Shown: in pieces, positions 15,131-57,832 of the stretch
Layout of the letters: each line of letters begins with the position of its first letter
Position numbering within the stretch: the stretch's first letter is position 1
Source of the DNA: Chrysemys picta bellii
Taxonomy: Eukaryota
Direction: 5' to 3'
Length of the DNA stretch: 64,000 nucleotides
Assembly: GCF_011386835.1 (NCBI RefSeq)
Contig: NC_088807.1
Coordinates: forward strand, 3,348,001 to 3,412,000
Notes under the pieces: model-generated
The model's database searches: none
The model's input: the letters and a program-made list of their open reading frames with translations, nothing else
What the model was told of the DNA's origin: nothing
Program-made: the position numbers and the translations under genes

Positions 15131-15268
15131 GACGGGAGGAAGGGGTGCTAAAGGACCAGGAGTAGAAGCCATCCCTCCACCCCCCTCGCAGCCCTAATCC
15201 CCAGCAACCCCTCCCCCCTCCACCCAAGGACACTGCCTCAGGGCAGGGGGAGACTCCCCCGATAGCCC

Positions 15269-15700: not shown

Positions 15701-16262
15701 CACAGTGCTCTCCCTCTCCCTGACTCCCCCATGTGACCCATCCTCAGAGCCCTCTTGTGTACCTCAATTGAGCCACACCCCAGAGATCCCCCCTCCAGCC
15801 AAGACTACCTCCATCCAGACTGAGTGACTCCCCAGTGCGCCATCACCCTGAGTGACTGCCCTGGAGACCCCCTGGTACCCTGCAGAGTCCCCCTATGTAC
15901 CACAGCCTGGTCAGCACTTCAACGGCCCCTCTCCCAGGAGCAGAGGAAGACACACCCCACGCCCCCAAGCCTGAGTGACTCTTCCAAAGAGACCCCATAG
16001 CCAGAGACACCCCCTCATATGCCCCAGGAACTAAGACTACAACTCAGAGCCCTTGCTCGGAACACAAATTCATCCCGTCTCTCAGAGAGGAGTTTGAATT
16101 TAATGAGCATGGTCTGCGTGTAAATATCTCACAACAGTACAGAGCAAGTAGTTGTGTCTCTGGAGGATATCTGCCATGACACAAATGCAGACGTGATTAA
16201 AACTCTTTTCCTACGAAGCCGGGAACTTGACAATCCCACGACATCTCTCAGCGCGGCGGCGC

Positions 16263-23401: not shown

Positions 23402-23742
23402 ACCCTCCTTCCCCAGAACCACGCAGTCTAATTAGCATGCGGGGAGGGAGGGGTATTTTGCTCACCTGCCTGTGAATCTGGATTCACATCAGACAGGCAA
23501 CGCCCCGGGCATCAGCTGGCAGAAAAAACTCTTCCGTTAACAGAACACACAGCGAGCTCCCAACCCACCTCTCTGCAGCTTCCGAACGGAAACGTGGCAG
23601 AGAAGAGCTGAAAATTCCTCATTAGGGGGGTAAAAAAACCACCTCAAACAACTATTTTTTTAACCCCCTCACACTCTGATGACACAATGGAGATCATCAT
23701 TCCGGCTCACGTGAGAGATTTGTGGAGACCCGCTCCGGGCTC

Positions 23743-23880
23743 TCAGTTGAGCTTCACCATGACTGTGGAGTTGGTGATCCGTGCGCCGTAGTGTCCTCGC
23801 CAGAAAAGAATGTCCTTCCCTTTGTGGAGGAAATGCACATACCGGACGCCGCGGCCGTACTGCCTGAACCGGTAGGACAC
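23743..23880 (-). CDS. Copy A exon 5 (terminal)
   Basis: [45 protein letters not shown]. Confidence 0.92.
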   Translation of the reverse strand: MSYRFRQYGRGVRYVHFLHKGKDILFWRGHYGARITNSTVMVKLN

Positions 23881-26800
23881 CTGGGAGGGAAGGAAAAGGA
23901 ACCCAAATTGATCTCTGGACCCTGTCACAAATCCATGGGCTCCAGAGAGAGGAGGTAGGGGCTACACAGACTGGGGAAGATATTCTTGCAGGGCAGGGGC
24001 TGGGCAAAACGGAATAACTGCTGTGCAGCGAGGGGGGGTCGGAGAGCAGGCGCCTGCCCCACAGTCCCCCCAGAGTAGTGGCCTCAGTTCCCTGTAAGGT
24101 GCATGGCCGCGCAGCAGCCTATTTAGTGCTGTGCAGGGGCTCAGGGAACCCGCCCGGCCGGGACCTGCCGCAGGCGGGGCGCCCCACCCCCAACTCAATC
24201 CCCAGACCTGCCATGGTCGGGGGAGGGGCGTCCTCAACCCAGCCCTATCCAGGACCTGCCTCGGCCAGGGAGAGAGGCGCCCCAGCCCTCCTGTGGCTGG
24301 GGGATGGGCGCCTATCCCATGGCCCCAGCCCCGGAGCTGCTGCAGCAGGGAGAGGGGCCTCTCCCCCAAACCCAAGTGCTGCTGTGGGGGGAGCCCTCAC
24401 TCCCTGCCATAGCCCCAGAGCACCCTCCTGCACCCCAAACCCCTCATCGCCAGCCCCACCCCAGAGCCTGGACCCTCAGCCAGCGCCCTCACCCCCTGCA
24501 CCCCAACCTTCTGCCCCAGCCCTGAGCCCCCTCCCACACATCCCTTCCATATTGGTGCACAGAACCAGGGTGGATACAAATCAATGGTTTTAAAAAAAAA
24601 AAAAAAATCTGATTTTTTTGATAAAATGCTTTTTGAGGAAAAAACTTATCTAAAGCTAGTTTTAATTACGATATCTTTGAGCTGTAACGTATCTCATCAT
24701 GGAATAGGGATTATACCTTCTAATTCTATAGTATGAGACAATATATTCATGTCATGTTGAAGAAAAGTTTTGTAAATGAGTTCCAATAGTTCATGGATTA
24801 GGGACCCAATCTTACAGGCTTCCAGGGGCTTCTGTATAGATTATTTGGGTCAGAGGTGGGCAAACTACGGCCCGTGGGTCCGTCCTGTCCGACCCTGGAG
24901 CTCCCGGCCGGGGACGCTAGCTCCCAGCCCCTCCCCTGCTGTCCCCCGTCCCCCACAGCCTCAGCTCGCCATGCCGCCAGCGGTGGGGCTCTGAACTCCG
25001 GTTGGGCAGCGCGGCTGTGAGAGCCGCCGGCCTGCCCCGGTGCTCTAGACTGCATGGTGGCATGGCTGGCTCCGGCCGGGCGGCGCGGCTGCCAGTCCTG
25101 GTGCTCTGAGCATGGTAAGGGGGCGGAGAGCAGGGGGGTTGGATAAGGAGCAGAGTGTCCCAGGGGCCAGTCAGGGGACAGGGAACAGGGGGTGGTTGGA
25201 TGGTGTGGAGGTTCTGGGGTGGGGGGTTGGTCAGGGGATGGGGAACACAGGAGTTGGATAGTCGTGGGAGTCCCGGGGGAGCCTGTCAGAGGGCAGGGGG
25301 GTGGATAGGGGTCGGGGCAGTCAGGGGACAAGGAGCGGCGGGGTTGGATGGGTCACGGGTTCTGAGGGGGGCGGGAAGTGGGAGGGGGCGGGGGACAGGC
25401 TGTTTGCCGAGACACAGCCTTCCCTACCCGTCTCTCCATACAGTTTCGGAATCCCGATGTGGCCCTTAGGCCAAAAAGTTTGCCCACCCTGATTTAGGTC
25501 TTTCTATCTACCCAATGGGACTCAGTGCTCAGTCTAGAAGATACCATCAGAGATGCTTAGTTTTGCAGTTCTCAAACTGGATTTGTGTCTCCAGAGATAA
25601 CATGCTTGTTAACAGCAAAAATGTTTTTAAATAAAAATATATATATAGAGAGAGAGGTGAGAAATAACAGACCTCAACCCTATTGTCCCTCTGCAAATTT
25701 GTGTACACACAGTCATTCTCTTACGTCTCTCTCTAAAAGTGCAAAGTTTCAAGAAGTTCAATGAATAGAAGGTTGTTGGGGGCGGAACAGATCTGGACAA
25801 GGAGAAGAAGTCTGGAGATACATGTGAGAAGGGAGGGAGAGGCAGTAGAAACAAAAGTGAAACTGTTTGAGCAGCATAATCCAGAAATCTTGAGCGTAGC
25901 CTTCATTGATTTGAGATCTACCATACCATTCTCTCACTAGAAGGGAAAACCTATAATGGCAGCAAGCCATAAGAGAGACCCAATTTGGGTTTCATCTATC
26001 TGAGTTGTGAGGAATATGTATTAAGATTATACCAACCAACAAGAATGCACTTTTATGTTGAAATACATGATTTAAATCACTAGTCAGGAAGACTTGATTT
26101 AATCACGATTTAAATCAAATCCACCCTGCACATAACAAAATTCATTCTGCACATGGGTGGGAAAAATTAAAGGGAGCTCTGGTGGTGACTCCCATCCCAC
26201 AGGTCTGGGCCCGGCTCCAGCCGCTTGCAGAATTCGGAGGAGCCCGCTAGAGCGTCACGTAACACGAGTGTCCGTGCACAGGTGGGGCCATTCCCACCTC
26301 CTTCCTGGCCCTGGTGCAGCTGGAAGCAGAACTTTTCCTGCCGAGGGGGGCAGGCAGGAATAGTTTGGGGGGAGGATGAGCGCCCACTAGCCCTGGCCAT
26401 CTGCCGCCTGTGGTGGGCTAGTGGATAGAGGACTGGATGTCAGGAGACCCGTGTTCTATTCCTCTCTCTGCCACTGCCACCCGCGCCTCCACTCCATAAT
26501 AAAACATACATAATTTTACAAATTACGCCCACTTCATCCCTACCGCTTTTCCATGGTAGATCTCAAAGCGCTTTACAATAGAGCTTGGTATCGTTATCCC
26601 CCTTCCACAGGGAAACGGGGGCACAGGGAGGGGAAGTGACTTGCCCAAAGTCAACCCAGTGGCTGAGTCGGTTCTAGAACCCAGGTGTCCTGACTCCCAG
26701 TCCCCAAATGTTCCCAGAGAGCTGACAACGGAGCCGGCTCACCTGGTGATACTGCGAGTCATTCGACTGTTCTAAGCGATCGGGGTTGGCCTGGAATTCA

Positions 26801-29800
26801 GCGATTACAGTTGTTCTGTTGGCAGCCAGGAGCTTGACGCAGATGGAGTATACACCGCCAGCGCCTTGCCGGGCGCCCCACCTGTGGGATGGGAACAGAC
26901 GTTGGGGAAAAAGGAACCTCAGGGGGCAGCAGGAGGGAGACAGGACACAGCACCCCCAAATATAGATCGTAAGAGGAATCCTGGGAACACACACAGACAA
27001 ATCCAACACATGCAGCACCACCGGATTTTTGGTTCCCATCAATCAGGGGATTGCACCAGCATCTTAGCTCCAAGCACTGTAACATCCTCACCCGCTGGTC
27101 TTGTCTAGCCCAGCAACTTCAGGGAAGCCCGACTACAATCCTAGCCAGCAAGTCCGAGAGCAGACGTGACCTGCGACGTGCATTTGACGCAAGCCCCTGA
27201 CCAAGAGTTGGGCGGGAGAAACTCACTGTTAAAAATCCAACCGTTCTCACTGCTTTAATTGAGGCCTAACAGGGCTCCCAACCCACATCTCTGGGTCCTC
27301 CGAGGGGACCTCCAGCTAAAAAGCAGATCAAACGAGGTGCAACAGGCTTGATATATTTAGGGCTTAAAAAACAACAACCCCAATACAAACCCCCAAACTC
27401 TTTGATTCTGAAGCACAGGTAGGGGCCCATTTTTTTTCAGCAGGTCACCATTAAGGCCTCTAGGGAGAAGAGGGTGAAACTTACCAATCGGAGATGTAGA
27501 TTTCCGGTTGGTAGTTATCCAACAGTTCTTCCCACAACCCCTCCTCTAGAAGATCTACCATCTGCGATTTGACACACCACCTACAGAGGGGGAAAGGAAA
27601 CCCTAATGACATATTGCAATAGCACCTAACTGAGATCAAAGCCACATTGTGTTGGGCGCAGAACAGACTCTGTGGACGCTAGGGGGAAAAAAGGGGTATT
27701 AGTGGACAGGTGTTGAAATCCTGCTGTAGATAAGGCAGCTGTGGGTTTAACGTGTTGGCAGGTCAAGATGAACTCTAGGAAGAGACAATCACGGTCCCAC
27801 AGAGTTCACGGTGCAGACATGGTGGGCAAAGGGTGGGAGGGGAAACCGAGGCACAGACAGAGGAAGTCGTTTTTGCTCACGGTCACCCAGCAGAGCCAGG
27901 AACAGAGCTCAGCTGTTCAAGCTTCCAGGCACTGCCCCAGGACAGCTCCCTGTGTAGACAGGCAAAGCGGCCATAAACTATGATTTAAACTCATGGGGTC
28001 AGTTTCCCCCAGTGCAAATAATGTCTGTTATAGGAGTTTGCTGGGGCAGCTACGCCTGGGGCTGGAATCGGGGCAAATCAGCCGTGCAGAGAAGGCCTCG
28101 TAAATCTGGAGTGACACCGTTCCCAGTTCTCCTCTGCCAGGCACCTTGGGTCGATACCGACACCTGGGTAGAGTGTGTGTGTTTGTGTGTCATGACGACA
28201 CAAGGGCAGCACAGAGTCAGGGCCTGCATCTGATCTTGGTTATACTGCTGCAAATCCAGAGCAACTCCAGATTTACTTAGGGCTTGTCTACACTGGCAAG
28301 TTTCTGCGCAGTGAAGCAGCTTTTTGCGCTCAAACTGCAGACGTGTACACACTGCCACCTTGTGCGCCAAACTCCTCAGTTGCAGCGCTGCAAAAAACCC
28401 ACCCCGAGAAGAGTCGTGAGGCTGTTTGCACAGAGGCTCCAGCGCTCATTGCCAGTGTAGACACTTGATTGCTATTGCGCTGTAATTGGCTTCCGGAGCT
28501 GTCCCTTAATCCCTCAAGTGACATCCCAGCATTTCCCCCGTTCCCTGCCTCAGGACTGGTTGCATCCTGCCACTGTCTGAACTCAGACAGCCTCTGTCCC
28601 CCAAAACACACTGTGTCTCCCCCCCCCTCCATACACACACACACTCCCTGTCACACACTCTCCCCCCTCCCCACCCAGTTGAAAAGCAGCTGGCAATGTA
28701 GTAGGATGCCCATGGAACAGTGGGATTGGGAAACCTGCATCATGTGACGCTGTGCCTCCCCCATGAGGCATTGCAAACCCTTCCCAAAGCCCCCTGCGGC
28801 CAGTTGCACAGGGGGAAGCTCCCACAATGCACTGCTGTCTTTGCCCCTTGCAAGAGCTGCTAATGTGGACGTGCTCCAGCGTCACAAGGAGCACAGTGTG
28901 GACACACAACAGCGGTTTAATTCCAGCGCTTTAATAAAAGTGACAAGGAGTCCGGTGGCACCTTAAAGACTAACAGATTGATTTGGGTAAAGCTTATACC
29001 CAAATCAATCCGTTAGTCTTTAAGTTGCCACCAGACTCCTTGTTTTTGTGGATACTGACTAACACGGCTACCCCATGATACTTAATAAAAGCGGTATAAC
29101 TTGTGGTGCAGAAACTTGCCAGTGTAGACACACCCTTAGACCACGTCCACAGTAGGAGCACTTTGCCGGTATAAGAATCCCAGGATACCCTGTTGGCAAC
29201 GAAAACCACCCTCCCTGAGCAACACAAACTCTCCTAGTAACAATGCACCGTTCTGTATCACTGAATCCACACTGGCTAGCACAACTCTCTTCCCAACGCC
29301 TGACCGACAGATCTGTGCCGGCAGAAATCTGTAGCGTAGCCCTAGCCTAAATCCAGAGCCACTCCGGATTTACTGGTGTGTACATATATTTGGGACATGA
29401 CGGTACAAGGTGCAGGGCAGACTCTGGCCTGGCACCTCTGGGTCTCATTTATGCTGGGTCAATCCAGAGTGACTCTGGATTCACAGGGGAACACGCAACA
29501 TCAGGATCGGTCTGGCCTTTGGAGAACAGGTAGCACTCTGCCGCATGGGGAAGGTGGGGGGCAAACAGGAAGGCCCAGGGGACAGACTCACTGAAAGGAT
29601 GAGACGAAGCAGGTCTGGGCCGGGGCGCCCTCGACCGGGCAGAGGTTCCCTTCCACATTCCAGCCATTGCCCCCATGCTCCACCTGCCAGTGAGAGAACT
29701 GATCTGTGGGAAGACGATGCGTCAAAGGGGGGGTGTAAGGTGTGGTAGGAGCTGGTTTGATGGGGTGGGGGGCGACATCCTGGTGGGCACCCGACACCCT

Positions 29801-31006
29801 GGTGGGCACCCATTCCCATTCCTATGGCTGATCTTATGGTCCCCCCCCCCCGCCCTAGACTCTCCTCGCCTCCTCCCATAACCCCCCCGCTTTCCCCCAT
29901 CCCTCTCCCTACAACCCCCATGTTCCCATCCATCCCTACCCCCCTTTCCTTACCCCCTCCCATAATCTCCCCCGCCCCGTCCGGCACCCACCCTGCCCGC
30001 AGGGGTTCCGGACCAGGTTGCGCCCGAAGGGCTCCAGGAGGCCGATCCGGCTCCACTGCGGTGAGGGGCAGAGGCGGGCGGCCACTAGGATGGCCCCCAA
30101 GCGCGGCCACCTCTCGCCCTGCAGCCGCCAGACCGTGGGCCCGTCGATGAGGTCCCGCCAGCGGCGACACACCAGCCGGCAGCGGGTCACCAGGGCGCGG
30201 CCCGGGACCCAGCTCAGGATCAGCGCCAGCAGCTCGTCCGGCAGCCGGTTCAGCTCCAGCGGGGCCGGGAGAGATGGGGGCGCCGACTGTGGCCTGTCCG
30301 GGGAAAACGGGAGCGCCGAGAGCCGCGCCCTCTCCGGCCTTGCCCCGAAAAACAGGAGCCCGACCTGCCGCTCCAACTGCCGCCTGCTCTCCTGCTGCTG
30401 CTCCCACAGCCGCTGCCGCTTCAACTGCCGCCTGCTCTCCTGCTGCTGTTCAAACTGCCGCTCCAACTGCCGCCTTCTCTCCTGCTGCTGCAACTGGCGC
30501 TCCAACTGCCACCTGCTCTCTTGCTGCTCCATCAACTGCCTCTCCCGCTCCATCAACTGCTGCTCCCGCAGCTCCCACTGCTCCCTGCTCTCCTGCTGCT
30601 GCTCCATCAACTGCCTCTCCCGGTCCATCAACTGCTGCTCCCGCAGCTCCAACTGCTCCCTGCTCTCCTGCTGCTGCTCCATCAACTGCCTCTCCCGGTC
30701 CATCAACTGCTGCTCCCGCAGCTCCCACTGCTCCCTGCTCTCCTGCTGCTGCTCCATCAACTGCCTCTCCCGGTCCATCAACTGCTGCTCCCGCAGCTCC
30801 AACTGCTCCCTGCTCTCCTGCTGCTGCTGCAACTGCCGCCTGCTCTCCTGCTCCATCAACTGCTGTTTGCTCTCCTGCTGCTGCTGCAACTGCCGCTCGC
30901 TCTCCTGCTCCATCAACTGCCGCCTGCTCTCCTGCTGCTGCTGCAACTGCCGCTCGCTCTCCTGCTGCTGCTCCATCAACTGCCGCTCGCTCTCCTGCTG
31001 CTGCAT
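23743..31006 (-). CDS. FBXO17/FBXO27-like F-box/FBA lectin, copy A, with N-terminal Q/E-rich repeat (about 499 aa in the unspliced exon-1 model)
   Basis: Exons 29992-31006, 29592-29703, 27485-27580, 26743-26881, 23743-23880 are GT-AG and in frame. F-box LPDELLALILSWVP...[13 protein letters not shown]; FBA motifs [33 protein letters not shown]. The start is uncertain (see findings). Confidence 0.85.
24566..26128. mobile_element. Non-autonomous hAT element in intron 4 of copy A (orthologous at 37082-38014 in B; right-end remnant at about 50470-50807 in C)
   Basis: TIR CAGGGTGGAT, TSD CACAGAAC/CACATAAC, TGATTTAAATCA subterminal repeats. Confidence 0.8.
24851..25491. mobile_element. hAT MITE nested in the previous element, copy A only
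   Basis: TIR CAGAGGTGGGCAAACT, TSD ATTTGGGT/ATTTAGGT; empty site at 37361. Confidence 0.8.
26743..26881 (-). CDS. Copy A exon 4
   Basis: 139 nt, [46 protein letters not shown]. Confidence 0.92.
27485..27580 (-). CDS. Copy A exon 3
   Basis: 96 nt, [31 protein letters not shown]. Confidence 0.92.
28945..29077. mobile_element. Penelope-like hairpin fragment, copy A only
   Basis: GGTGGCACCTTAAAGACTAAC...GTTAGTCTTTAAGTTGCCACC inverted repeat, recalled as typical of turtle Penelope remnants. Confidence 0.5.
29592..29703 (-). CDS. Copy A exon 2
   Basis: 112 nt, [37 protein letters not shown]. Confidence 0.92.
29992..31006 (-). CDS. Copy A exon 1 (Q/E repeat, linker, F-box)
   Basis: ATG at 31006; open frame to donor CAG G|GTGGGT; 338 codons + 1 nt. 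Confidence 0.7.
30362..31006 (-). repeat. CAG/GAG-rich repeat with a 4 x 75-nt core (30527-30826)
   Basis: QQQESREQ[L/W]ELREQQLM[D/E]RERQLME x4, flanked by shorter QQQESxRQL units. Confidence 0.92.
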
Positions 31007-31085
31007 GTCCGCGGGAGCCCGGCTCTCTCTGCCGCACAACGGCCTGGCTCGCTCAGGCCCAGCTCTCGCTCCTCGCTGCACCCGC

Positions 31086-31181
31086 TCACGGGACCCAGCT
31101 CAGGATCTGCGCCAGGAGCTCGTCCGGGAGCGGGTTCAGGTCCAGCAGGACCGGGGGAGCCCGGCTCTCCGACTGCCCCAT
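31086..31181 (-). other. Truncated F-box 5' fragment (31 codons + TGA) upstream of copy A: uORF or alternative first exon
   Basis: [31 protein letters not shown], identical in protein to the start of copy C; GTGAGC donor overlaps the stop. Confidence 0.75.
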
Positions 31182-31876
31182 GGCCGGGGGGCGGCCTGGC
31201 TCGCTCAGGCCCAGTTACTTTCCCCGCTGCATCCGCTCATGTGATCCCGGCCCCGCCTTGGAGCCGCCCCGGCCTCGTTTACACGGTGCAAAGCGAGCAC
31301 CGGATTCCCCCCTTGCCCGCCAGGGGGTGCCTGGAACAGGCTCCGGGTTCCCCGCTCCGCCCCGCTGCGGGGTCTGACACCGGCTCTGGTCCAGGCTGCC
31401 AGCCGGCAAAGCCCCCACACCGGAAAAGAAGCTGGGAGATGGAGGGGGGTGAAAAGTGAGGGGGGGGGGCTCAGGACTCCTGGGTTCTCTCCCCAGCTGC
31501 AGGCGAGCGGGGGGGGGGGGGGTCTAGTGGTTAGAGGGGGGCCAATGCCGGGGGTGAGGAGAGAAGGGGGGGACCAGGTGGGGGGGGGGCGCTGTGCGGG
31601 GGAGGGGGCACAGAGGAGTGGGGGGGGGCACCAGGGACAGCGGGATTGGGGGTGACTCCGATTTACACCAGCCGGCGACCAGAGCCGGTGTCAGACCCCG
31701 CAGCGGGGCTGAGCGGGGAACCCGGAGCCTGTTCCAGGCGCCCCCTGGCGGGCAAGGGGGGAATCCGGTGCTCGCTTTGCACCGTGTAAACGAGGCCGGG
31801 GCGGCTCCAAGATCCCATGAGCGGATGCGGCGAGGAGCGGGAGCTGGGCCGGAGCGAGCCAGGCCGCCCCCCGGCC

Positions 31877-32077
31877 ATGGGGCAGGCAGAGAGCCGGGCT
31901 CCCCCGGCCATGGGGCAGCCGGAGCGGCGGGGGTCGGAGTTGGAGCCCCTGATTTCAGGGCAGGCGGGACAGGGCGCGGCGCTCGGAGCTGACCCCGCTC
32001 CCGGACGGGCTCCTGGCGCGGAGCCTGAGCTGGGTCCCGGCCGCGCCCTGGGGACCCGCTGCCGGTGTAGTGTATGA
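31877..32077 (+). pseudogene. Inverted, frameshifted fragment of an F-box exon 1
   Basis: Starts MGQAESRAPP; a shifted frame reads [28 protein letters not shown]; 31680-31890 is the reverse complement of about 31160-31390. Confidence 0.8.
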
Positions 32078-45185: not shown

Positions 45186-46618
45186 GTGACCAAACTGGCT
45201 CAGGAACAACATGCGGCTCCTTGTATAGGCACCGACTGCTACGAGCGCCAACTTTCCAATGTGCAAGGGAGTGCTCAACCCCTGGCTCTGCCCCAGGCCC
45301 TGCCCCCACTCCACCCCTTCCTGCCCCCTCCTCTGAGCCTGCCGTGCCCTCGCTCTTCCCCCACCCCAGAGCCTGCTGCACACCAGGGGAGGGAGGGAGG
45401 GAGCAGCTGATCAGCCGGGCTGCAGGTGGGTGGGAGGCTCTGGGGGCCGGGAGAGGGGGGAACTGAGGGGGGGCTGCTATGGTATTACTGGGGCTCTTTG
45501 GCAATGTACATTGGTAAATTCTGGCTCCTTCTCAGGCCCAGGTTGGCCACCACCCTCTAACCACTAGACCCCACTGGCCTTCTAGAGCTGGCGATAGAAC
45601 CCAGGAGTCCTGAGGCCCCCCCTTACTTTTCACTCCCCCCCCATCCCACCTTTTTTTCCAGTGTGGGGCCTTTGCCGGCTGGCAGCCTGGGCACATGCCC
45701 TGTCCAGGGAGTGCGGCTCTGCCCACCCGCCGCTGCCTCCCTCCCCAGCCCCGGGCTGGCTGGCTGCCACCAGCCGCTCGGTGCTTCCTGCGGGCTGACG
45801 TCCTTCCGCCTCTGCCCTGCAACACCGGCTGGTTGGGCTGCGGAGGGAGCCAACAGCAGCCGGCGCAGCCCGGTGCCTGCATCGAGCTGACCGGCCTCAG
45901 CCCTGGGAGGACAGCGGGGGAGCCCTGGCCGTGCAGGGCTGTGTGAGCGAGTGATTAGAGCAGGGGATGGCTGGGAGCCAGGACTCCTGGGTTCTCTCCC
46001 CAGCTCAGGGGGGGGAGAGTCTATTGGTTAGAGTAGGTCATTGTTATTGACCTCCTGGGGTGGGTTCTATTCCCTGCTGTTTCACATACTCCCCATGTGA
46101 CTTTGGGCAAGTCCCTTCCTACATGCCGTGCCTCAGTTTCCCCACCTGCACAAATGGGGTCAATGATACTGAACCACCTCCCACTGGTTCGGCCTTTCGT
46201 TGCCAGCTTCCCCGGGAGGAACGTGTCCCTGCAGAGCTGTCTCAGGCTCCAGACGCTGTTTCACGATCCTGAGCTTCGCCCCCTCTCCGAGCATGCCGGG
46301 CAGCAGCTGGATCGCACTGCCTGGAGCAGCAGCATCTCCTCGGCTGGCTTCTCGGCAGCTTCCAACCTGCTGCTCAGGGAACTCGGGGGGCACAACTGCC
46401 TGCCCCTCCTGGGCCAGGCCGCCCAGCACAAACTCCTCTCACTGAAGGGAGAAGAACTGGGCCATTCAAGCCTGCTGAGCTGTGAAACACCCACACCACA
46501 CGCTGTTCAGAAAAGCACTTTAATCTTCACTAACAAGCCGCACAGCTGGTTATATCATCTTCAGCGACTCCATTTCTGGACAGAGCCCTGTGAAACTGAC
46601 CAGCGAATCCATTCCCTG

Positions 46619-48290
46619 TGTTACCAGATGTGCCCATTACTTTGGGGTATGCTCATTTATTCGGGTTACTCCTCTGGGGAAGGGGGTTCTGTAATCCTGT
46701 CAATGTACTGCTTGTGTCACGTATCAGAGGGGTAACCGTGTTAGTCTGAATCTGTAAAAAGCAACAGAGGGTCCTGGGGCACCTTTGAGACTAACAAACT
46801 TCTGTTAGTCTTGAAGGTGCCACAGGACCGTCTGTTGCTTGTGTCGTGTGTGTTTACATATGGAGCTTTACGTCTCCCTTCTGCAAGTCCCCTGCCAATG
46901 GAGCTACCCTGCAGAACCTAGGGTCCCTAGGGCTGGGTTACACCCGCCCCAGAACCGGATGAACACCCCCACACCCACCCGTACATTAACAGAGCAAGTC
47001 TGAGCGGACCGGGTCAATCAGCACTGTCTGGCTGACCTTATATGTCTCTGGACTCACTGGGCTGGAGGAAGCAGCAATTTCACACTGTCTCTCCTTATAT
47101 GCCCCTGGGCTCCATGGACTGGGTCAAGCAGCACTTTCAAGTTGTTACCCTTATGCGTCCCAAATTCAGCACGTCCCTATCCCCACTCCCCCAACACAAT
47201 TGTACTGGCAGTAACCTACTCGATGAGCAAACCCCGCAGGATTTTGGGCGCTGCAGGGATCTTTAGCTTAGGTAAAAGAAGCGTTGCTGTAGAGTGAATG
47301 GGGGAAGCTAAAAACACAAACGAGTAAAGTTCAGCGAGAGAGAGAGAGAAGCAACCAACTTAACCATAGAAGTTATTTACTGAATAACAGTGATAACTAC
47401 ACAAGGAGCTAAACCAACATAACATACATGATTAAAGGTTAATACCTAAGGTAGAAAGGAAAACAGAGAGAGAGAGAGAGAGAGAGAAAGAGGGGGGATC
47501 TCACCCACTCCATGAGGCTTGAACTGGTCGGGGTTCCCAGGTGATGGTGGTAGCTGAGGGTCCTGAGGGCTGGAGACAGGCAGAGCCCCCAGCACGATCA
47601 GTCAGGAGAAGATGGAGTTCCAGTGGAACTGATGCATACTTTGGATCTAAGCATCAGAACAGTGACTGGAGGGTGAGTAGGGATTTTTGTAGAGAAAACA
47701 CAATGGTTGAAGGGAGAACACTAGATTTGTTTATAGATAAGCTAATGACTCAAGGGTTTTCTTTAGACTAGACAATAGGAGCTGATCACTCTGGGCTATG
47801 GGTGGGGTTTTCTTCCAGGGAGCTCACAATGCAACTAGGCTGCTTCAGTATTTGGATATCAATCAAGGATTCATTACTAGAATTGGTCTGATAACTGCTG
47901 AGCTGGGTGTGTGCAGGTGTAGGTTCATTAACATCTGGAGCAGAGATTCCCATGATGCAGTGCTTCCCTGCTTTTTCTGGTCCCAGAGTTCGGTGCAGTT
48001 CTCTGTTCTCCATTCTGTATACAAATTGAGATGTCTTCCTGTCCCATCTTTCATGCAGATGAGGCGAGGGGAGTTGTCTCTGCTCTCCATTCTATATGCT
48101 AATGGAGATGTCTTCATCTTGTCACCCTTGTCAGGAGGGGTCTAGGTGTGTCTCCCAACGCCCTTCACTGCTCTCTGCAAGTTTTTTCCTCTGATGGGTT
48201 TCGGTTTAAGCAGAGGCTGGGGGTGCCTTTCATAAGTCAGGCTGGATACTGCACCCTGGTTCCCCAAGAACACAGAGGTGTCTGGTATCA
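46619..48290. mobile_element. LTR-like insertion (1.67 kb) with a nested Penelope-like hairpin at about 46722-46841
   Basis: TGTTACCAGA...TCTGGTATCA inverted termini, TSD CCTG; absent at paralogous sites near 21450 and 34390. Confidence 0.8.
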
Positions 48291-49786
48291 CCTGCCCCTC
48301 TTTTCTGGTGCGGGACCAGCTCGAAACTTCCAGGCCCTTTTATTAATAAAAACAATTCAGGCCAACAGGAAACCCGTTAGCTCCTCAGTAACTAACCTAC
48401 CAGGGATTTCAGCCTAGGCCCGTGGGATCATTTTAAACAATAACAGCCTGGCCCAAAGGGCCACCATCCACCCCGGCTCTCTGCACACCAAGGGAACGGG
48501 CTGGGAGGTTGCTCAGCGCTAGGACTGAATAGCTACCCTAGTTCCCTTCTCCTTCTCTCCGGTGTTAACCAGGCCTGAGTCCGGTGGAGTCAGCAGGCCT
48601 CATTCTTCACTCAATCAGTTCTGGCCTGTCTTTACCAGTAGGGCTAAGACCCATCCCGCTGACTGCACGCAGGACCAGCTGATGCATTGAAGGCCGTCGC
48701 TGGGCCATGTGGCAGAAATTACACCCCAGTCCCCTAGAAATATCTTGCCCAACAACCCCTGCTGGGAGTGGGCTCTGCGGCTCCACCTATAGCCCTGTGC
48801 CCATGCCCCATGATGATGCGTTAGTACAAGAGTGGACTTTGCCTTATGCCCGCATCACCCCCCAAAATGGGGAGGGAACTGCACCAAAGCACTGCTAGGC
48901 CCCAGTTCTGGTCTCATGTAGACCTGTGTGAATCTGGAGTCACTCCACTGGAGTCTTTCCAGATTTACACACCCATCAGTTATTTCAGAAGCTGACCCTT
49001 GGTTTGTGTCAGCAAAAGGCCTGAGCGTCTACCACGCCCACTGGCTTTGCTGGGATCTGAGCGCAGCGAGAACAGACCTGAAGGTTATGTTCCCCATAAA
49101 CTCCTGGACAATCAACAAGCAGCTATTTCCATTTGTCTAGGGGCTGCACGGTATGGTATTCTCGTGAGCGCTGCACTACCCGAAGCTTGCAGGAGCTGGG
49201 TTCGAATCCCCCTTCCCTAGAACCATGCAATCTAATTAGCACCGGGGGTAGGGGGGTATATTTTCTTCACCTGTGAATCTGGATTCACATCAGACAGGCA
49301 TCAGCTGGCAGAAAAAAATCTTTCATTAACAGAACCCACCTCTCTGCAGCTTCCTAACGGAAATGTGGCAGGGACAATCTGAAAATTCCGCATCGTAGTG
49401 GTTAAAAACAACAACACCCCAAACAACTATTTTTTTAACCCCTTCACACTCTGATGACACAATCCCAAAGCCCCCCAAATAGAGGCACAAGCCCAGTTAT
49501 TTCCATCTTTAATGTCTTGTTGCTTCTGCCGTGCAGGGGCAGGGTCACACTGACCGAAGTCAGGCACTAGGAACCTAAAGATTCACCCCGGTGCTCTTTG
49601 GTCCTGCGCAGGACGAGGCTGGCCAGAAAGAACGGACCGAAGACGCTCCTCAGACAAAGGGGCGTATTAATTTCAATGAGACGCATCCCCCTGATTTGTT
49701 CTCGGACGGGAGAGGAGCTCGCAGAGGCAAATGGGGATCATCATTCCGGCTCGCGTGAGAGATTCATGGAGACCCGCTCCGGGCTC

Positions 49787-49924
49787 TCAGCTGAGCTTCA
49801 CCATGACTGTGGAGTTGGTGATCCGTGCGCCGTAGTGTCCTGCCCAGAAAAGAATGTCCTTCCCTTTGTGGAGGAAATGCACATACCGGACGCCGCGGCC
49901 GTACTGCCTGAACCGGTAGGACAC
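49787..49924 (-). CDS. Copy C exon 5 (terminal)
   Basis: [45 protein letters not shown]. Confidence 0.92.
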   Translation of the reverse strand: MSYRFRQYGRGVRYVHFLHKGKDILFWAGHYGARITNSTVMVKLS

Positions 49925-52900
49925 CTGGGAGGGAAGGAAAAGGAACCCAAATTGATCTCTGGACCCTGTCACAAATCCGTGGGCTCCAGAGAGAGGAAGT
50001 AGGGGCTACACAGACTGGGGAAGATATTCTTGCAGGGCAGGGGCTGGGCAAAACGGAATAGCTGCTGTGCAGCGAGGGGGGGGGGTCGGAGAGCAGGCGC
50101 CTGCCCCGCACTCCCCCCAGAGTGGTGGCCTCAGTTCCCTGTAAGGTGCTTGGCCGAGCAGCAGCCTATTTAGTGCTGTGCAGGGGCTCAGGGAACGCGC
50201 CCGTCTGGGACCTGCTGCAGCCAGGGCGCCCCTCCCCTAACTCAGCCCCGGACCTGCTGCGGTCGTGAGAGGGACATCCTCAATCCAGCCCCATCCAGGC
50301 CCTGCCTTGGCCAGGGAGAGAGGCATCCCAGCCCCGGCCCGAACCTCCTGTGGCCGGTGATGGGCGCCTATCCCACAGCCCCAAGTGCTGCTGCGGCGAG
50401 AGAGAGCTGGGGGGAGCCCCAGAGCACCCTCCTGCACCCCAAACCCCTCATCCCCGGCCCCACCTCAGAGCCCGCACCCCCAGCCAAAGTCTGGAGATAA
50501 ATGGGAGAAGGGAGGGACAGGCAGTAGAAACAAAAGTGAAACTGTTTGAGCAGCATAATCCAGAAGTCTTGAGGTCTTTCTGAGCGTAGCCGTCATTGAT
50601 TTGAGATCTACCATACCGTTCTCTCACTAGACGGGAAAACCTATAATGGCAGCAAGCCATAAAAGAGACCCAATTTGGGTCTCATCTATCTGAGTTGTGA
50701 GGAATATGTATTAAGATTATACCAACCAACAAGAATGCACTTTTATGTAGAAATCCATGATTAAATCGAGTCTTCCTGACTAGTGATTTAAATCAAATCC
50801 ACCCTGCACATAACAAAATTCATTCTGCACATGGGTGGGAAAAATTAAAGGGAGCTCTGGCGGTGACTCCCATCCCACAGGTCTGGGGCCGGCTCCAGCC
50901 CTTTGCAGAATTCGGAGGAGCCTGCTAGAGCGTCACGTAACACGAGTGTCCGTGCACAGGTGGGGCCATTCCTACCTCTTTCCTGGCCCTGGTTTTCCCG
51001 CTGAGTGGGGCAGGCAGGAATAGTTTAGGGGGGAGGATGAGCACCCACTACCCCTAGCTATCTGCCGCCTGTGGTGGGCTAATGGATAGAGGACTAGATG
51101 TCAGGAGACCTGTGTTCTATTCCTCTCTCTGCCACCGCCACCCGCGCCTCCACTCCATAATAAAACATACATAATTTTACAAATTACGCCCACTTCATCC
51201 CTACCGATGTTAGATCTCAAAGCACTTTACAGTAGAGCTTCGTATTAGGGTGACCAGATAGCGAGTGTGAAAAATCGGGATGGGGGTGGGAGGGTAATAG
51301 GAGCCTATATAAGACAAAGCCCCAAATATCGGGACATCTGGTCACCCTACTTGGTATCGTTATCCCCCTTTCACAAGGAAACGGAGGCACAGGGAGGGGA
51401 AGTGACTTGCCCAAAGTCAACCCAGTGGCTGAGTCGGTTCTAGAACCCAGGTGTCTGACTCCCGGTCCCCAAATATTCCCAGAGAGCTGGCAACGGAGCC
51501 GGCTCACCTGGTGATACTGCGCGTCGTTCCACTGTTGTATGGGATCGGGGGTGGCTTGGAATTCAGCGATTACAGTTGTTCTGTTGGCAGCCAGGAGCCT
51601 GACGCAGATGGAGTATTCACAGCCACAGTCTTCCCGGGCACCCCACCTGTGGGACGGGAGCAGATGATGGGGAACAAGGAACCTCGGAGGGCAGCAAGAG
51701 GGAGACAGGACACAGCCCCCCGAATGTAGAAGGTAACAGGAATCCTGGGAACACACACAGCCGAATCCAACACACGCAGCACCACCGGCTTTTTGGTCCC
51801 CATCAATCAGGGGATTGCACCAGCATCTTAGCTCCAAGCACTGTAACATCCTCAGCCGCTGGTCTTGTCTAGCCCAGCAACTTCAGGGAAGCCCGACTAC
51901 AATCCTAGCCAGCAAGTCCGAGAACAGACGTGACCTGCGACGTGCATTTGACGCAAGCCCCTGACCAAGAGTTGGGCGGGAGAAACTCACTGTTAAAAAT
52001 CCAACCGTTCTCACACCTTTAATTAAGGGCTAAGAGGGCTCCCAACTGACATCTCTGGGTCCTCCAGGTTCAACAGACTTGATAATTTTAAGGCTTAAAA
52101 AAGTAACAACCCCCAAACAAATCCAAACCCTTTGATTTTGAGGCACAGGTGGCCCCTATAACTAGAAATGAAGGAAACCACAGAGGTCGTATTTTAGTCA
52201 TCAGAAATCAGCAGCAAAGACACAATCCCATTTCTTTCAGCAAGTCACCATTAAGGCCTCCAGGGAGAAGAGGGTGAAACTTACCAATCGGCGATGTAGA
52301 TTTCCGGTTGGTAGGTATCCAGCAGTTTTTCCCATAACCCCTCCTTTAGAAGATCTACGAGCTGCGATTTGATGCACCACCTACAGAGGGGGACAGGAAA
52401 CCCTAATGAGATATTGCAATAGCACCTAACTGAGATCAGGGCCACATTGTGCAGGGCGCTGCGCAGAGGGGAAACCGAGGCACAGACAGAGGAAGTCGTT
52501 TTTGCTCAAGGTCACACAGCAGAGCCAGGAACAGAGCTCAGGTGTTCACGCCTCCGGGCACTGCCCCAGGACAGCTCCCTGTGTAGACAGGCAAAGCGGC
52601 CATAAGCCATGATTTGAACTCATGGGATCAGCTCCCGCAGTGCAAATAATAGCTGCTATAGGAGTTTGCCGGGGCAGCTACGTCTGGGACTGGAATCAGG
52701 GGAAATCAGCCGTGCAGAGAAGGCCTCGTAAATCTGGAGTGACACCGTTCCCAGTTCTCCTCTGCCAGACACCTCGGGTCGATACCGACACCTGGGTAGA
52801 GTGTTTGTGTGTCATGACGACACAAGGGCAGCACAGAGTCAGGGCCTGCATCTGATCTTGGTTATACTGCTGCAAATCCAGAGCAACTCCAGATTTACTT

Positions 52901-55056
52901 AGGGCTTGTCTACACTGGCAAGTTTCTGCGCAGTGAAGCAGCTTTTTGCACTCAAACTGCAGACGTGTACACACTGCTGAGCCACCTTGTGCGCCAAACT
53001 CCTCAGTTGCAGCGCTGCAAAAAACACCTCGCCGAGTCGTAAGGCTGTTTGCACCGAGGCTCCAGCGCTCATTGCCAGTGTAGACACTTGATTGCTATTG
53101 CGCTGTAATTGGCTTCCAGAGCTGTCCCTTAATCCCTCAAGTGACATCCCAGGGTTTCCCCGGTTCCCTGCCTCAGGACTGGTTGCATCCTGCCACTGTC
53201 TGAACTTAGAAGACAGCATCTGACACCCTCTGTCCCCCAAAACACACTGTCTCTCCCCCCCCCTCCACCCACTTCAGTTGAAAAGCAGCTGGCAACGTAG
53301 TAGGATGCCCATGGAACAGTGGGATTGGGAAACCTGCATCATGTGACACTGTGCCTACCCATGAGGCATTGCAAACCCTTCCCAAAGCCCCCTGCGGCCA
53401 GTTTGTACAGTGGGAAGCTCCCACAATGCACTGCTGTCTTTGCCCTTGCAAGAGCTGCTAATGTGGATGTGCTCCAGCGTCACAAGGAGCACAGTGTGGA
53501 CACACAACAGCGGTTTAATTCCAGCACTTTAATAAAAGCGGTATAACTTGTGGCGCAGAAACTTGCCAGTGTAGACACACCCTTAGACCACGTCCACAGC
53601 AGGAGCACTTTGCCGGTATAAGAATCCCAGGACACCCTGTTGGCAACTAAAACCACCCTCCCTGAGCAACACAAACTCTCCTAGTAACAGTGCACCGTAC
53701 TGTATCACTGAATCCACACTGGCTAGCACAACTCTCTTCCCAACGCCTGACCGACAGATCTGTGCCGGCAGAAATCTGTAGTGTAGCCTAAATCCAGAGC
53801 CACTCCGGATTTACTGGTGTGTACATATATTTGGGACATGACAGTACAAGGTGCAGGGCAGACTCAGGCCTGGCACCTCTTGGTCTCATTTATGCTGGAT
53901 CGATCGAGAGCGACTCTGGATTCATAGGGGCACACGCCAGCTCAGGACAGGTCTGGCTTTTGGAGAACGGGTAGCTCTCTGCCCCATGAGGAAGGTGGGG
54001 GGCAAACGGGAAGGCCCAGGGGACCGACTCACTGAAAGGATGAGACAAAGCAGGTCTGGGCCGGGGCGCCCTCGACCGGGCAGCGGTTCTCTTCCACCTT
54101 CCAGCCATGGCCCCCATGCTCCACCTGCCAGTGACTGAACTGATCTGCGGGAAGAGGCTGTGTCAAGAAGGGGTATGAGGTGTGGTGGGAGCTGGTTTGA
54201 TGGGGTGGGGGATGATGCCCAGGTGGGCACCCATTCCCAGGGGAAGGGGAGGAGTCGGTTAATGTGGCTCTCCAAAATAAACAGAGAGAGAACTAAATAC
54301 CTGGGAGAGGGGGGGTTGCAGGGGAGGAGGGAGACTCCCCCCCTTTCCTGACACCCATCTCAGTACCCCAGGTACCTTTTTGCCCCAGTGCCCTCTCATC
54401 CCCCACCAGTGCTAATTTTTTCCCCTTCCCCCACTCTGGTGATCCCTCTCCTTTGCCCCCCCAACACAACCCACACTCTCTCTGGTGCCCCTCCCCATAT
54501 ACACACACCTCAGTGCTCCCCATTCACCTCCTACTGTCCCACCTGGGCCCCCCTCCTCCAATCCCCTCTCCCTCCCCACCCCCGGTGGCACCTGGCATTG
54601 GTCACTGTCGGAAGACAGGACACTGGGGGAGATGGACCATGGGTCTGACCCACTGTGGCCGTTCTTATGGTGCCCCCCCCAACCTGCCCTGGACTCCCCC
54701 CTCCCTATAATCCCCCTTCCCTCTCCCAGGCCCCCCCCGGTCCGGCACCCACCCTGCCCGCAGGGGTTCCGGACCAGGTTGCGCCCGAAGGGCTCCAGGA
54801 CGCAGATCCGGCTCCACTGCGGCGGGAGGCAGAGGCGGGCGGCCGCCAGGGTGGCCCCCAAGCCCGGGCACCTCTCGCCCTGCAGCCGCCAGACCGTGGG
54901 CCCGTCGATGAGGTCCCGCCAGCGGCGACACACCAGCCGGCAGCGGGTCACCAGGACGCGGCCCGGGACCCAGCTCAGGATCTGCGCCAGGAGCTCGTCC
55001 GGGAGCGGGTTCAGGTCCAGCAGGACCGGGGGAGCCCGGCTCTCCGACTGCCCCAT
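49787..55056 (-). CDS. FBXO27: FBXO27-like F-box/FBA lectin, copy C (about 262 aa, closest to family consensus; FBXO27 vs FBXO17 orthology unresolved)
   Basis: Exons 54753-55056, 54033-54144, 52285-52380, 51508-51646, 49787-49924 in frame; WGAREDCGC and [13 protein letters not shown] resemble recalled human FBXO27 WGARHDSGC and [13 protein letters not shown]; adjacent to ACP7 as FBXO27 is in human. Confidence 0.88.
51246..51349. mobile_element. Short hAT MITE, copy C only (same family at 59355-59478)
   Basis: TIR TAGGGTGACCAGAT, 8-bp TSD CTTCGTAT/CTTGGTAT. Confidence 0.75.
51508..51646 (-). CDS. Copy C exon 4
   Basis: 139 nt, [46 protein letters not shown]. Confidence 0.92.
52285..52380 (-). 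CDS. Copy C exon 3
   Basis: 96 nt, [31 protein letters not shown]. Confidence 0.92.
54033..54144 (-). CDS. Copy C exon 2
   Basis: 112 nt, [37 protein letters not shown]. Confidence 0.92.
54753..55056 (-). CDS. Copy C exon 1 (F-box)
   Basis: 101 codons + 1 nt, [23 protein letters not shown]...RNPCGQ. Confidence 0.92.
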
Positions 55057-57832
55057 GGCCGGGGGGCGGCCTGGCTCGCTCAGGCCCAGTTACTTTCCCT
55101 TCTGCATCCGCTCATGTGATCCCGGCCCCGCCTTGGAGCCGCCCCCGACCTGGTTCACACGGTGCAAAGCGAGCACCGGATTCCCCCCTTGCCCGCCAGG
55201 GGGTGCCTGGAACAGGCTCCGGGTTCCCGGCTCTGCCCCGCTGCGGGGTCTGACACCGGTTCTGGTCACCGGCTGGTGTAAATCGGAGTCACCCCCAACC
55301 CCGCCGTCCCTGGTGCCCCCCCACTCCTCTGTGCCCCCCTCCCCCACACAGCGCCCCCCACCTGGTCCCCCCCTTCTCTCCCCACCCCAGGCATTGCCCC
55401 CCGCCTCTGACCACTAGACCCCACTGCTCTTCTGGAGCTGGGGAGAGAACCCAGGAGTCCTGAGGCCCCCCCCTTACTTTTCACCCCCCTCCATCTCCCA
55501 GCTTCTTTTCCGGTGTGGGGCGGGCACATGCCCCGTGCAGGGTGTGCGGCTCTGCCCGCCCCTGCCTCCCTCCCCAGCCCCGGGGCCACCCGCCGCTCGG
55601 TGCCTCCTGCGGGCTGACGTCCTTCCGCCCGGCCCTGCAGCACCGGCTGGTTGGGCTGCGGAGGGAGCCGAGAGCAGCCGGGGCAGCCCGGTGCCTGCAT
55701 CGAGCTGACCGGCCTCAGCCCTGGGAGGACAGCGGGGAGCCCTGGCCGTGCGGGCGGCTGCGGAGCGAGGTAAACGCGAGTGCGGGGCTAGGGAGACCCC
55801 TGGCCGGGCAGGGGAGTGTGAGCGAGTGGTTGGGGGGTCTGGGAGCCAGGACTCCTGGGTTCTTTCCCCAGCTCTGGGAGGGGAGTGGGGTCTAGTGGCT
55901 AGAGCAGGGGGTCTGGGAGCCAGGACTCCTGGGTTCTTTCCCCAGTTCTGGGAGGGGAGTGGGGTCTAGTGGCTAGAGCAGGGGAGGCTGGGAGCCAGGA
56001 CTCCTGGGTTCTATCCGAGCTCTGGGAGGGGAGTGGGGTCTAGTGGTTAGAGCAAGGGGGCTGGGAGCCAGGACTCCTGGGTTCTATCCCAGCTGTGGGA
56101 GGGGAGTGGGTTCTAGTGGCTAGAGCAGGGGGTCTGGGAGCCAGGACTCCTGGGTTCTCTCCCCAGCTTGGGGAAGGGAGGGGAGGGGGGTTATAGTGAT
56201 TAAAGTAGGTCACTGTTATTAACCTCCCAGGGCTGGGTTCTATTCCCTGCTGTCTCACAGACTCCCCACGTGACTTTGGGCAAGTCCCTGCCTACGTGCT
56301 GTGCCTCAGTTTCCCCACCTGCACAAACGGGGTCAATGACACTGAACCACCTCCCACGGCGGGTGTGGAGGTGGCTGAGAGCAGCCAGGGAAGGACTGAA
56401 TATGTCAGCACCGTAACTGGTGCCCAGCAACTCGCAGAGCACAGGCATGGAGCTGGGCCCTGCCCCAAGGCGTTTGCAGTCCGGCTGCTGCCCTGCGTGG
56501 GAATGCCATAGGGGGGTAGAAAGCTCCCAAAGCTAGAAATAGAACCCAGGAGTCCTGATTCCCAGCCCACACCTCCTGCTCTAACCACTAGATCCCACTC
56601 CCCTTCCAGAGCTGGGGAGAGAACCCAGGAGTCCTGCCTCACATCCCCCCACGCGCTAACACAGCGCCCTGACCTAAGAAGCACTAGATCTTCCTTCCCC
56701 ATTTCCCCCCCATCTCATGACTTGCTTTAATGTTGCAACTCTGTCCGCTGGATAACTCAGCCGGTCAGGTCTAGCCGGCGTCTCCACCTGCCAGCGCCCC
56801 GTCCCCTCCCGCGTGGAATCCCTGAGGGGGATCCATCCCTCGGTGCTTCTCCAATGACTGATTTCTTGGCCTCGCTAGGTTCTCCCATCACCCCACGGCT
56901 AAGGGAGCTGGGGCTTTAATGCTAGGGTAGGGGGCAGTATGTGGGGGGTGCAGTGGTATCTCCCTGGCACTACTCGCTCCGTGGTTGCTCAGGTCGTCCG
57001 TTTGCAAGGTTGCCCATCTGGCACCGCCCAAGCCCCTAATTGGGGTTACGGGCAGAGTTGGGGGGCCAGACGGCTGGTGTGGGTGGCAGCTTGGATAACA
57101 GGGCGTGCCTGTTTGTCTGCCTCTGCTCTCGGGTTCGCCCAGGAGCGGGACTCTGGGCTGCCCGTCCTGGTGGGTCAGCGTGGTGCGGAGGGGCACCTGC
57201 CTAGTGCCCTGGGGCAGAGCCAGGAGCAACTGGCACGGGAGGGGCAGCCGGTGTTGGCCTGGGGCTTGAGGTGGGAGGGAGAATTTTGGTTGCTGTCCCA
57301 TGGCACAGGGACCCCATCCCCCTTCTGCGAGGGCACCCTGATCCCTCCCCAACAGACTGTATCCCCTCAGCCCCCCTTTGTGAGGGCGTGGAGGCTGTTT
57401 TTCCAGGCATCCCTTGCCCGATGCTGAGATGCAGCTGCCTCTGGGGTGGCGTGTGTTGGCTGTCTATACAGGGATCCACCATAAGGGACGTGTTTGTCCC
57501 CTGCAGCCAGCTCCCCAATAACTCCACTCCTATACCCCATCAGGGAACCCCAGAGCTCGGTCCCCCAGCACCTCCTCCTAGCCTCCCCACTAGGAGACCC
57601 CCAGAGCCAGCTCCCCCTTACCCCTGCTCCCAGCCCCCCCATAACTCTGTGAATTTGAACTCTGCCCCGCAGGAGTTGCCTAGCCTCACTGCTGACGTAT
57701 CAGGCTGTGGAAATCAGAGCTGTGAGGCGCTGACTCAGGACAACAGGAGGATCTGACCCGCTCAGAGGCCAGCGCCCCACGGCTTTCGTTTCCCCGTCCC
57801 TCTCCCACACAGCCGGGAAGAGCAGGACGAGG

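Follow-up and report, generated by a model that had tools for sequence, protein, structure and literature searches.

A 64,000-nucleotide stretch of the Chrysemys picta bellii genome (hereafter the window; assembly GCF_011386835.1, contig NC_088807.1, positions 3,348,001 to 3,412,000 of the forward strand) contains three five-exon genes, and no more, each encoding an F-box and an FBA domain. All three lie on the minus strand between ACP7 and MRPS12/SARS2; read from the ACP7 flank (~56-64 kb), the order is copy C, copy B and copy A, followed by MRPS12 and SARS2 (Table 1). In our own five-exon models all introns of the three copies are GT-AG and no internal stop codons are present, and the models of copies A and B are identical to the NCBI Chrysemys picta bellii proteins P0001 and P0003, respectively, both named 'F-box only protein 17-like'. 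Self-comparison of the window showed a unit of 12.3-13.7 kb occurring three times at 85-95% identity, introns included. A sequence-only reading of this stretch had proposed three tandem, intact genes, and this was borne out, as nine of the nine peptides it quoted were found at their minus-strand places with frames and splice sites intact. Two of its details have to be qualified. Copy A is intact solely in the form of a 499-aa protein, whose start lies within a minisatellite encoding Q/E/R-rich sequence, and the near-identity ascribed to the copies was overstated, since 13 of the 94 F-box/linker sites and ~7 of the 32 exon-3 residues vary. No fourth copy was detected within the window by blast; the extra matches were a relic of an exon-1 start and an inverted exon-1 fragment, both upstream of copy A.

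Lectin-type F-box proteins are cytosolic sensors of exposed N-glycans, acting in endoplasmic reticulum-associated degradation and in the clearance of damaged lysosomes, and to our knowledge little is known of how their specificity evolves. The assignment of the turtle genes to this FBA-type family, made earlier from the letters alone, was confirmed by Pfam, phmmer and Foldseek searches. Pfam recognized an F-box (PF00646/PF12937) and an FBA domain (PF04300) in these genes, the F-box with E values of 3e-11 and 1e-9 for exon 1 of copy C and of 6e-11 for the open reading frame of copy A; precomputed Pfam results for P0001 and P0003 agree on the F-box. The F-box core LPDELL...CRRWRDL is kept in copies A, B and C, and the exon pieces match PF04300 positions 17-175. 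Among solved structures, phmmer returned FBXO6 (E 6e-57), FBXO2 (2e-56) and FBXO44 (2e-54). The AlphaFold model of copy B (predicted local distance difference test, pLDDT, of 87) was matched by Foldseek to the Fbs1 sugar-binding domain (1umh, 2e33, 2rj2, 1umi) with template modelling (TM) scores of 0.83-0.88 and a root-mean-square deviation of 2.1-2.7 A. The best mammalian matches are FBXO27 proteins, with 56% identity in platypus, 49% in tenrec and 48% in elephant. Turtle loci show the gene order ACP7 (minus strand), FBXO copy or copies, MRPS12, SARS2, and this MRPS12/SARS2-ACP7 neighbourhood presumably corresponds to the mammalian FBXO17/27 locus. Mammals have FBXO17 and FBXO27 there, as opposed to one ancestral gene in turtles and three in pond turtles. 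Full-text literature searches returned no earlier description of a turtle FBXO17/27 expansion.

An N-terminal pattern G-x-x-x-S is typical of N-myristoylation. The MGQSESR start of copies B and C fits this pattern and is putatively myristoylated, whereas the MQQQES start of copy A does not fit. FBXO27 is targeted to endomembranes through N-myristoylation (PMC6389600). The turtle copies share with FBXO27 (Fbs3; N-myristoylated, lysophagy) the F-box plus FBA architecture, and the Gly2/Ser6 start of copies B and C is of the myristoylation type. Two of the copies depart from FBXO27 in different ways: copy B is devoid of the pocket Trp, and copy A has no Gly2 and carries a 237-aa helical extension instead.

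To locate the differences among the copies relative to the sugar-binding pocket, we defined the pocket loops beforehand as beta2-3, beta3-4, beta5-6, beta7-8 and beta9-10, 40 residues in total, using the strands assigned by DSSP in the AlphaFold model together with the loops as named by Kumanomidou et al., 2015 (PMC4603797). Residues were mapped through an alignment of copy B to mouse Fbs1 (2e31). Copies A, B and C vary at 52 amino-acid sites, 16 of which sit in these 40 residues (hypergeometric p=0.002), and loop enrichment was found within the FBA domain alone as well (p=0.012). The differences are therefore clustered in short loops, as had been noticed earlier. The placing of the clusters in the glycan pocket held for the start of exon 4, which is the beta5-beta6 loop, and for the 'terminal pocket' cluster, which is the beta9-beta10 loop with Tyr279/Trp280, but not for the GGxGW cluster, which forms the beta1-beta2 turn outside the pocket loops named in the literature. 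Further clusters correspond to the beta3-beta4 loop with Phe177 (SSF-x-WC) and, in an 11-residue stretch, to the end of beta7 and the beta7-beta8 loop. In Fbs1, formation of the pocket hinges on the beta5-beta6 loop, and Trp280 is essential for N-glycan binding (PMC4603797).

The turtle copies have the ten-stranded beta-sandwich of the Fbs1/FBXO2 sugar-binding domain (PDB 1UMI, 2E31) in common with that protein, at 39-44% identity. The Fbs1 pocket triad Phe177/Tyr279/Trp280 reads Phe/Phe/Trp in C and A and Phe/Phe/Arg in B, so that Phe177 is present in all three copies and Trp280 in A and C; the conservative Tyr279 to Phe change is also seen in 37 of 45 relatives. Copy B differs from Fbs1 further by Pro at Lys281, and the beta5-beta6 loop is rewritten in both A and B. 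Among the 45 relatives, Trp occupies the Trp280 position in 38; turtle B and Trachemys A are the only ones with Arg there. The loop motif R-x-D-C-G-C is 80-95% conserved in the same relatives, which range from amphibians to mammals, and is broken in B and A; only copy C among the three retains the beta5-beta6 D-C-G. A known precedent is FBXO44 (FBG3), which has the FBA fold without a carbohydrate pocket owing to its loops beta2-3, beta5-6, beta7-8 and beta9-10 (PMC4603797). These four pocket-abolishing loops are the ones that vary among the turtle copies. Yet FBXO44, which sits at another locus (FBXO2/6/44), keeps Tyr/Tyr/Trp and has lost its pocket via hydrogen-bond networks of the loops, whereas turtle B has swapped the Trp itself.

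Table 1. Positions in the window of the three F-box/FBA genes and of the sites discussed in the text
Feature	Position	Strand	Remark
Copy A, FBXO27/17-like, fast-evolving type	23743..31006	minus	499 aa
Copy A exons	31006-29992, 29703-29592, 27580-27485, 26881-26743, 23880-23743	minus	
Copy A beta5-beta6 loop codons (A-R-Q-G-A-G)	26857..26874	minus	conserved D-C-G motif lost
Copy A beta9-beta10 loop (ILFWRGHYGA)	23782..23811	minus	Trp kept
Copy A minisatellite, Q/E/R-rich N-terminal extension	30365..31004	minus	Tandem Repeats Finder (TRF) periods 48, 57, 75
Relic of ancestral exon-1 start upstream of copy A	31089..31181	minus	MGQSES...SWVP then TGA; blast match to exon 1
Copy B, FBXO27/17-like, rewired-pocket type	36087..43918	minus	274 aa, start MGQSES
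Copy B exons	43918-43579, 42975-42864, 40736-40641, 39968-39830, 36224-36087	minus	
Copy B beta5-beta6 loop codons (T-Q-R-N-G-G)	39944..39961	minus	nucleotide-identical in 4/4 B orthologues
Copy B beta9-beta10 loop (10 residues)	36126..36155	minus	2e31 alignment
Copy B Trp280-equivalent codon	36144-36146	minus	AGG (Arg)
Copy C, FBXO27/17-like, ancestral type	49787..55056	minus	262 aa, start MGQSES (myristoylation-type)
Copy C exons	55056-54753, 54144-54033, 52380-52285, 51646-51508, 49924-49787	minus	
Copy C beta5-beta6 loop codons (A-R-E-D-C-G)	51622..51639	minus	ancestral state
Copy C beta9-beta10 loop (10 residues)	49826..49855	minus	Trp kept
Codon 92, exon 2 start	29696-29694 (A), 42968-42966 (B), 54137-54135 (C)	minus	

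Comparison with other turtles placed the three genes in time. One gene occupies the interval from ACP7 to MRPS12/SARS2 in Chelonia mydas and in Pelodiscus, and Trachemys and Emys have three genes in the order C-B-A, as in Chrysemys. In Mauremys reevesii we found six tandem FBXO27/17-like copies between ACP7 and MRPS12 (L004, L007, L005), two of which, both A-like, are damaged, one by a 1-nt deletion in exon 1 that shifts the frame and the other by conversion of the stop codon into CGA. Over the whole gene with introns, Chrysemys B diverges by 1-2% from Trachemys B, by ~4% from Emys B, by 8-11% from Mauremys B and by 10-12% from the Chelonia gene, while the Chrysemys paralogues differ from one another by 8-22%. 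The duplications are thus about as old as the Mauremys split or older. The locus is a real lineage-specific expansion of a known family, with genes already annotated by NCBI as 'FBXO17-like'; the expansion proposed in the sequence-only reading stood with respect to the one gene of sea and softshell turtles, but it is old, common to three emydid genera and partly to Mauremys. That the copies are collapsed or duplicated haplotypes has next to no probability. What speaks for it is that some residues and the number of repeats differ in protein models of earlier Chrysemys assemblies (P0096, P0107), but the copies diverge by 8-22% in their introns and the same three types recur in the same order in the independent Trachemys and Emys assemblies, by which the artefact is excluded and the triplication is confirmed as real.

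Although the copies are old, parts of them resemble each other more closely than they resemble their own orthologues. The A-C tract in intron 2 differs by 2.4-5%, vs. 5.8-8.9% between A and Trachemys A, and similar tracts were found for A-B near exon 3 (4-5%) and for B-C in exon 1 (3.2%). Trees of single exons conflict accordingly: exon 4 groups the genes by type, with 100% support for the B clade and 85% for the A clade, whereas exons 1 and 5 group them by species or in mixed types. For the Chrysemys copies, synonymous divergence (dS) amounts to 0.12-0.23 in the variable clusters as opposed to 0.03-0.07 elsewhere, a 3-8-fold difference. Taken together, the closer paralogue tracts, the conflict of the exon trees and the dS contrast show that gene conversion has made the framework evolve in concert, while the loops have kept an older divergence. 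The combination of the same framework with different loops is largely a gene-conversion mosaic. Variants of the beta9-beta10 loop cut across the types. 'ILFW' is found in Mauremys A-like copies, Chrysemys A, Chrysemys C and Trachemys C, and 'HFRP/HFRL' in all B genes and also in Trachemys A and Emys A; the 'IL' of copy C is common to copy A and Trachemys C, while Emys C has the ancestral 'TH'. The Chrysemys models from earlier assemblies (P0107, P0096, P0002, P0006) carry C50R, R67Q and C214R in B and G107E and N249S in A. These differences often equal the state of another paralogue, which fits polymorphism by ectopic gene conversion.

Selection was analysed with our own implementation of the Goldman-Yang (GY94) codon models M1a and M2a, with site posteriors from naive empirical Bayes (NEB) and not Bayes empirical Bayes (BEB). 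Codons of Pelodiscus exons 1 and 2, unreadable in the homologous frame in its assembly, were masked, and this species was dropped in a robustness run. Under M0 the ratio of non-synonymous to synonymous rates (dN/dS, omega) was 0.46. On one tree, M2a was favoured over M1a with twice the log-likelihood difference (2dlnL) equal to 50.7 (p 1e-11; 7.1% of sites at omega 4.7). As the segment trees disagree, the single-tree result was treated as unreliable and the analysis was redone with per-exon trees, which gave 2dlnL 25.2 (p 3e-6; 7.6% of sites, omega 3.4), and 29.0 (p 5e-7; 6.6%, omega 5.3) after removal of Pelodiscus and two likely pseudogenes. The high-posterior sites of this last run were 12, 21 and 50 (F-box/linker), 92, 101 (beta1-2 turn), 126 (adjoining Phe177), 163 (beta5-6), 181, and 228 and 232 (beta9-10). 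A small class of sites with omega above 1 is favoured by these models, but six of the ten top sites (12, 21, 50, 92, 101, 181) lie outside the pocket loops and one is a serine artefact: at residue 92 copies B and C have AGT, whereas A and the Mauremys copies have TCT, a switch that scores as strong positive selection with the protein unchanged. Site 50 is a CpG codon that is polymorphic between assembly versions.

These statistics bear on whether the glycan loops of all three copies are engaged in a continuing arms race driven by glycans of pathogens or of damaged organelles, an explanation that we consider unlikely. The M2a tests (2dlnL 25.2-50.7, ~7% of sites at omega 3.4-5.3) speak for it, as do high-posterior sites in the pocket loops or next to Phe177 (126, 163, 228, 232). 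By parsimony the beta5-beta6 loop alone has a dN/dS of 2.3 (16.5 non-synonymous, 2.5 synonymous changes) and is the sole pocket loop above 1; pairwise omega among the three Chrysemys copies is ~1 overall (0.94-1.14) and 1.3-2.8 in the top loops. None of the pairwise values, however, is significantly above 1, and the predefined pocket loops taken together reach a parsimony dN/dS of 0.63 vs. 0.44 in the FBA domain outside them (Fisher p=0.23), with 0.98 for the F-box and linker. Within the B and C lineages top-loop omega is 0.18-0.40, the loops of both are near-invariant between species (0.18 for B, 0.20 for C), and the beta5-beta6 loop of B has not changed by a single nucleotide among its orthologues. 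Gene conversion, demonstrated at this locus, inflates codon-model tests for positive selection. Diversifying selection on the loops, as inferred in the sequence-only reading, thus finds little support, given the low omega of the pocket loops and of the top loops of B and C. The signal of a few fast-evolving sites is not pocket-specific, and gene conversion, CpG sites and multi-nucleotide changes all confound it.

The three copies have followed different courses. The loops of copy C match those of the type-C genes of Chelonia, Pelodiscus and Mauremys, and comparison with the Chelonia gene, which yields an omega of 0.41 overall, of 0.34 for the FBA domain and of 0.20 for the top loops (p=0.037), shows it to be under purifying selection. 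Like FBXO27, copy C has most likely retained binding of the N-glycan core. For copy B, 12 changes relative to the ancestral consensus are fixed in four of four orthologues (Chrysemys, Trachemys, Emys and Mauremys): H98R, V122T, S123T, A161T, R162Q, E163R, D164N, C165G, P191S, P193A, W231R and A232P. Eight of the 12 fall in the predefined pocket loops (p=7e-5), W231R corresponds to the Fbs1 Trp280 position, and together they add about five positive charges. Fourteen non-synonymous and three synonymous changes were counted on the B stem. Between Chrysemys and Mauremys, B shows an omega of 0.47 overall, 0.26 in the FBA domain (p=0.001) and 0.18 in the top loops. On this sequence evidence copy B is a constrained gene with a rebuilt pocket rather than a decaying one. 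Its stacking on chitobiose has probably been lost and replaced by binding of another ligand, as we infer from the residues present.

Copy A lacks an ATG at the site homologous to the start of B and C. Only the minisatellite keeps its frame open, running from the ATG at 31006 into the F-box and giving an N-terminal extension of 237 aa; in the AlphaFold model residues 2-215 form one continuous helix, followed by a disordered linker of 30 residues. Trachemys A uses the same ATG and the same F-box junction and differs by indels only in multiples of three. An older Chrysemys model (P0096) is 525 aa long, and its difference from the 499-aa model indicates polymorphism in repeat number. The open frame of the repeat was rejected as evidence of coding, as all three frames are open in the copy A repeat. 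Beyond the relic of the ancestral exon-1 start listed in Table 1, an inverted exon-1 fragment lies upstream of copy A at ~31989-32065. Emys retains a longer relic comprising exon 1 and exon 2 (L002:10307-11331), which NCBI has spliced into a 355-aa model. Relative to the ancestral consensus, copy A has accumulated 25 non-synonymous and 4 synonymous changes, and its omega against orthologues is 0.8-1.4, indistinguishable from neutral; the gene is intact in three emydid genera. Copy A is either relaxed or still changing its function.

The 3' ends of the genes also differ. In B and C an ATTAAA lies 273 nt after the stop codon (in the regions 35797-36086 and 49500-49786), and copy A has a deletion in the matching region (23470-23742), with no AATAAA or ATTAAA within 1.5 kb. 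Of the words of copy A exon 1, 0.5-0.9 occur in small sequencing runs (34-273 million letters), as do 0.57-0.79 of those of the last exon plus 3' untranslated region (UTR) of copy B. These runs are probably RNA or capture libraries, because genomic DNA runs of this size would hardly contain any particular locus. It could be argued that A and B are redundant, decaying duplicates without lectin function and that C is the sole working gene. Copy B has no essential Trp and the R-x-D-C-G-C motif is broken in A and B; copy A evolves at omega ~1, has no counterpart of the ATTAAA common to B and C and has lost the ancestral start, and in Mauremys the A-like copies have a frameshift or have lost the stop codon. 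We nevertheless regard this as quite improbable. The frame of B is intact in four species, with an FBA omega of 0.26 (p=0.001) and unchanged loops, and A is intact in three emydid genera, with the new start codon common to Trachemys. The presence of A exon 1 and the B 3' end in the small runs would, furthermore, be hard to explain as low-depth DNA.

Apart from the genes, the window contains arrays of a 74-75-bp unit (up to 12 copies) on both strands at 5350-5637, 32683-32825, 44301-45181, 55833-56180 and 58030-58408. Such arrays occur in the Chelonia ACP7 flank as well, and their origin is probably a dispersed repeat. An 88-bp tandem repeat in five copies (15267-15701) lies within the MRPS12/SARS2 region, where positions 14001-16000 have a GC content of 0.66 and a GC skew of -0.43.

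The best explanation of these data, which we hold with reasonable confidence, is an old functional divergence overlaid by gene conversion, and not a current arms race. The ancestor was a single FBXO27/17-like gene located between ACP7 and MRPS12/SARS2, for a predicted substrate receptor of a Skp1-Cullin-F-box (SCF) ligase with an F-box and an FBA lectin beta-sandwich; the present copies are predicted to assemble into such ligases. The B and A types arose before the split of Emydidae and Mauremys (Geoemydidae), and repeated gene conversion has since evened out the F-box, the framework strands and parts of the introns, while the pocket loops kept their type-specific sequence. Copy C retains the ancestral pocket, with Phe/Phe/Trp and the R-x-D-C-G-C loop. 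Copy B appears to have gone through one burst of change in its pocket loops (Trp280 to Arg, the Lys281-equivalent Ala to Pro, AREDC to TQRNG) that left a net positive charge, and to have remained since then under purifying selection as a functional receptor. In copy A the myristoylation-type start and the conserved loop cysteines have been lost and a long, predicted Q/E/R helix has been gained, and the gene evolves at a near-neutral rate.

Several points weigh against this account. The class of sites at omega 3.4-5.3 is favoured by the site models and may reflect further positive selection in addition to one old burst, chiefly in copy A and in the beta5-beta6 loop. The omega of the B stem is 1.4, not significantly above 1, and what looks like a burst may have been drift under relaxed constraint that was later restored; one complex mutation may also account for the clustered beta5-beta6 changes. 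The assignment of the loops is a model-based one, made from secondary structure and published loop names, and it is a guess that the runs holding A exon 1 and the B 3' end are RNA.

A more far-reaching interpretation of the three genes as a set of receptors is offered tentatively, since we think it doubtful. In it the pocket loops would act as cassettes exchangeable by gene conversion; B would have stayed fixed, over tens of millions of years, in a form whose basic pocket lacks Trp and recognises a non-canonical ligand, possibly an anionic glycan or a ligand other than a glycan; and A would have turned from a membrane-anchored protein into one with a long single-helix or coiled-coil arm. The turtle genes resemble other tandem families shaped by gene conversion in that the framework is homogenised within species and the binding loops keep their type across species. 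They differ in numbering only three to six genes and in offering no evidence for population-level diversity or for pathogen ligands.

On the reading we prefer, old divergence kept in the loops of a converted framework, the pond-turtle locus provides a natural series on a near-constant framework: an ancestral pocket (C), a rebuilt and conserved pocket (B) and a drifting pocket (A). This series is convenient for loop-swap and glycan-array work on the contributions of the beta5-beta6 and beta9-beta10 loops. The locus also serves as a warning, as the same framework with differing loops and a significant site model can stem from gene conversion around old, constrained differences, without any arms race in progress. 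The conserved Trp-less pocket of copy B and the helical arm of copy A are the points that merit experiment in this family.

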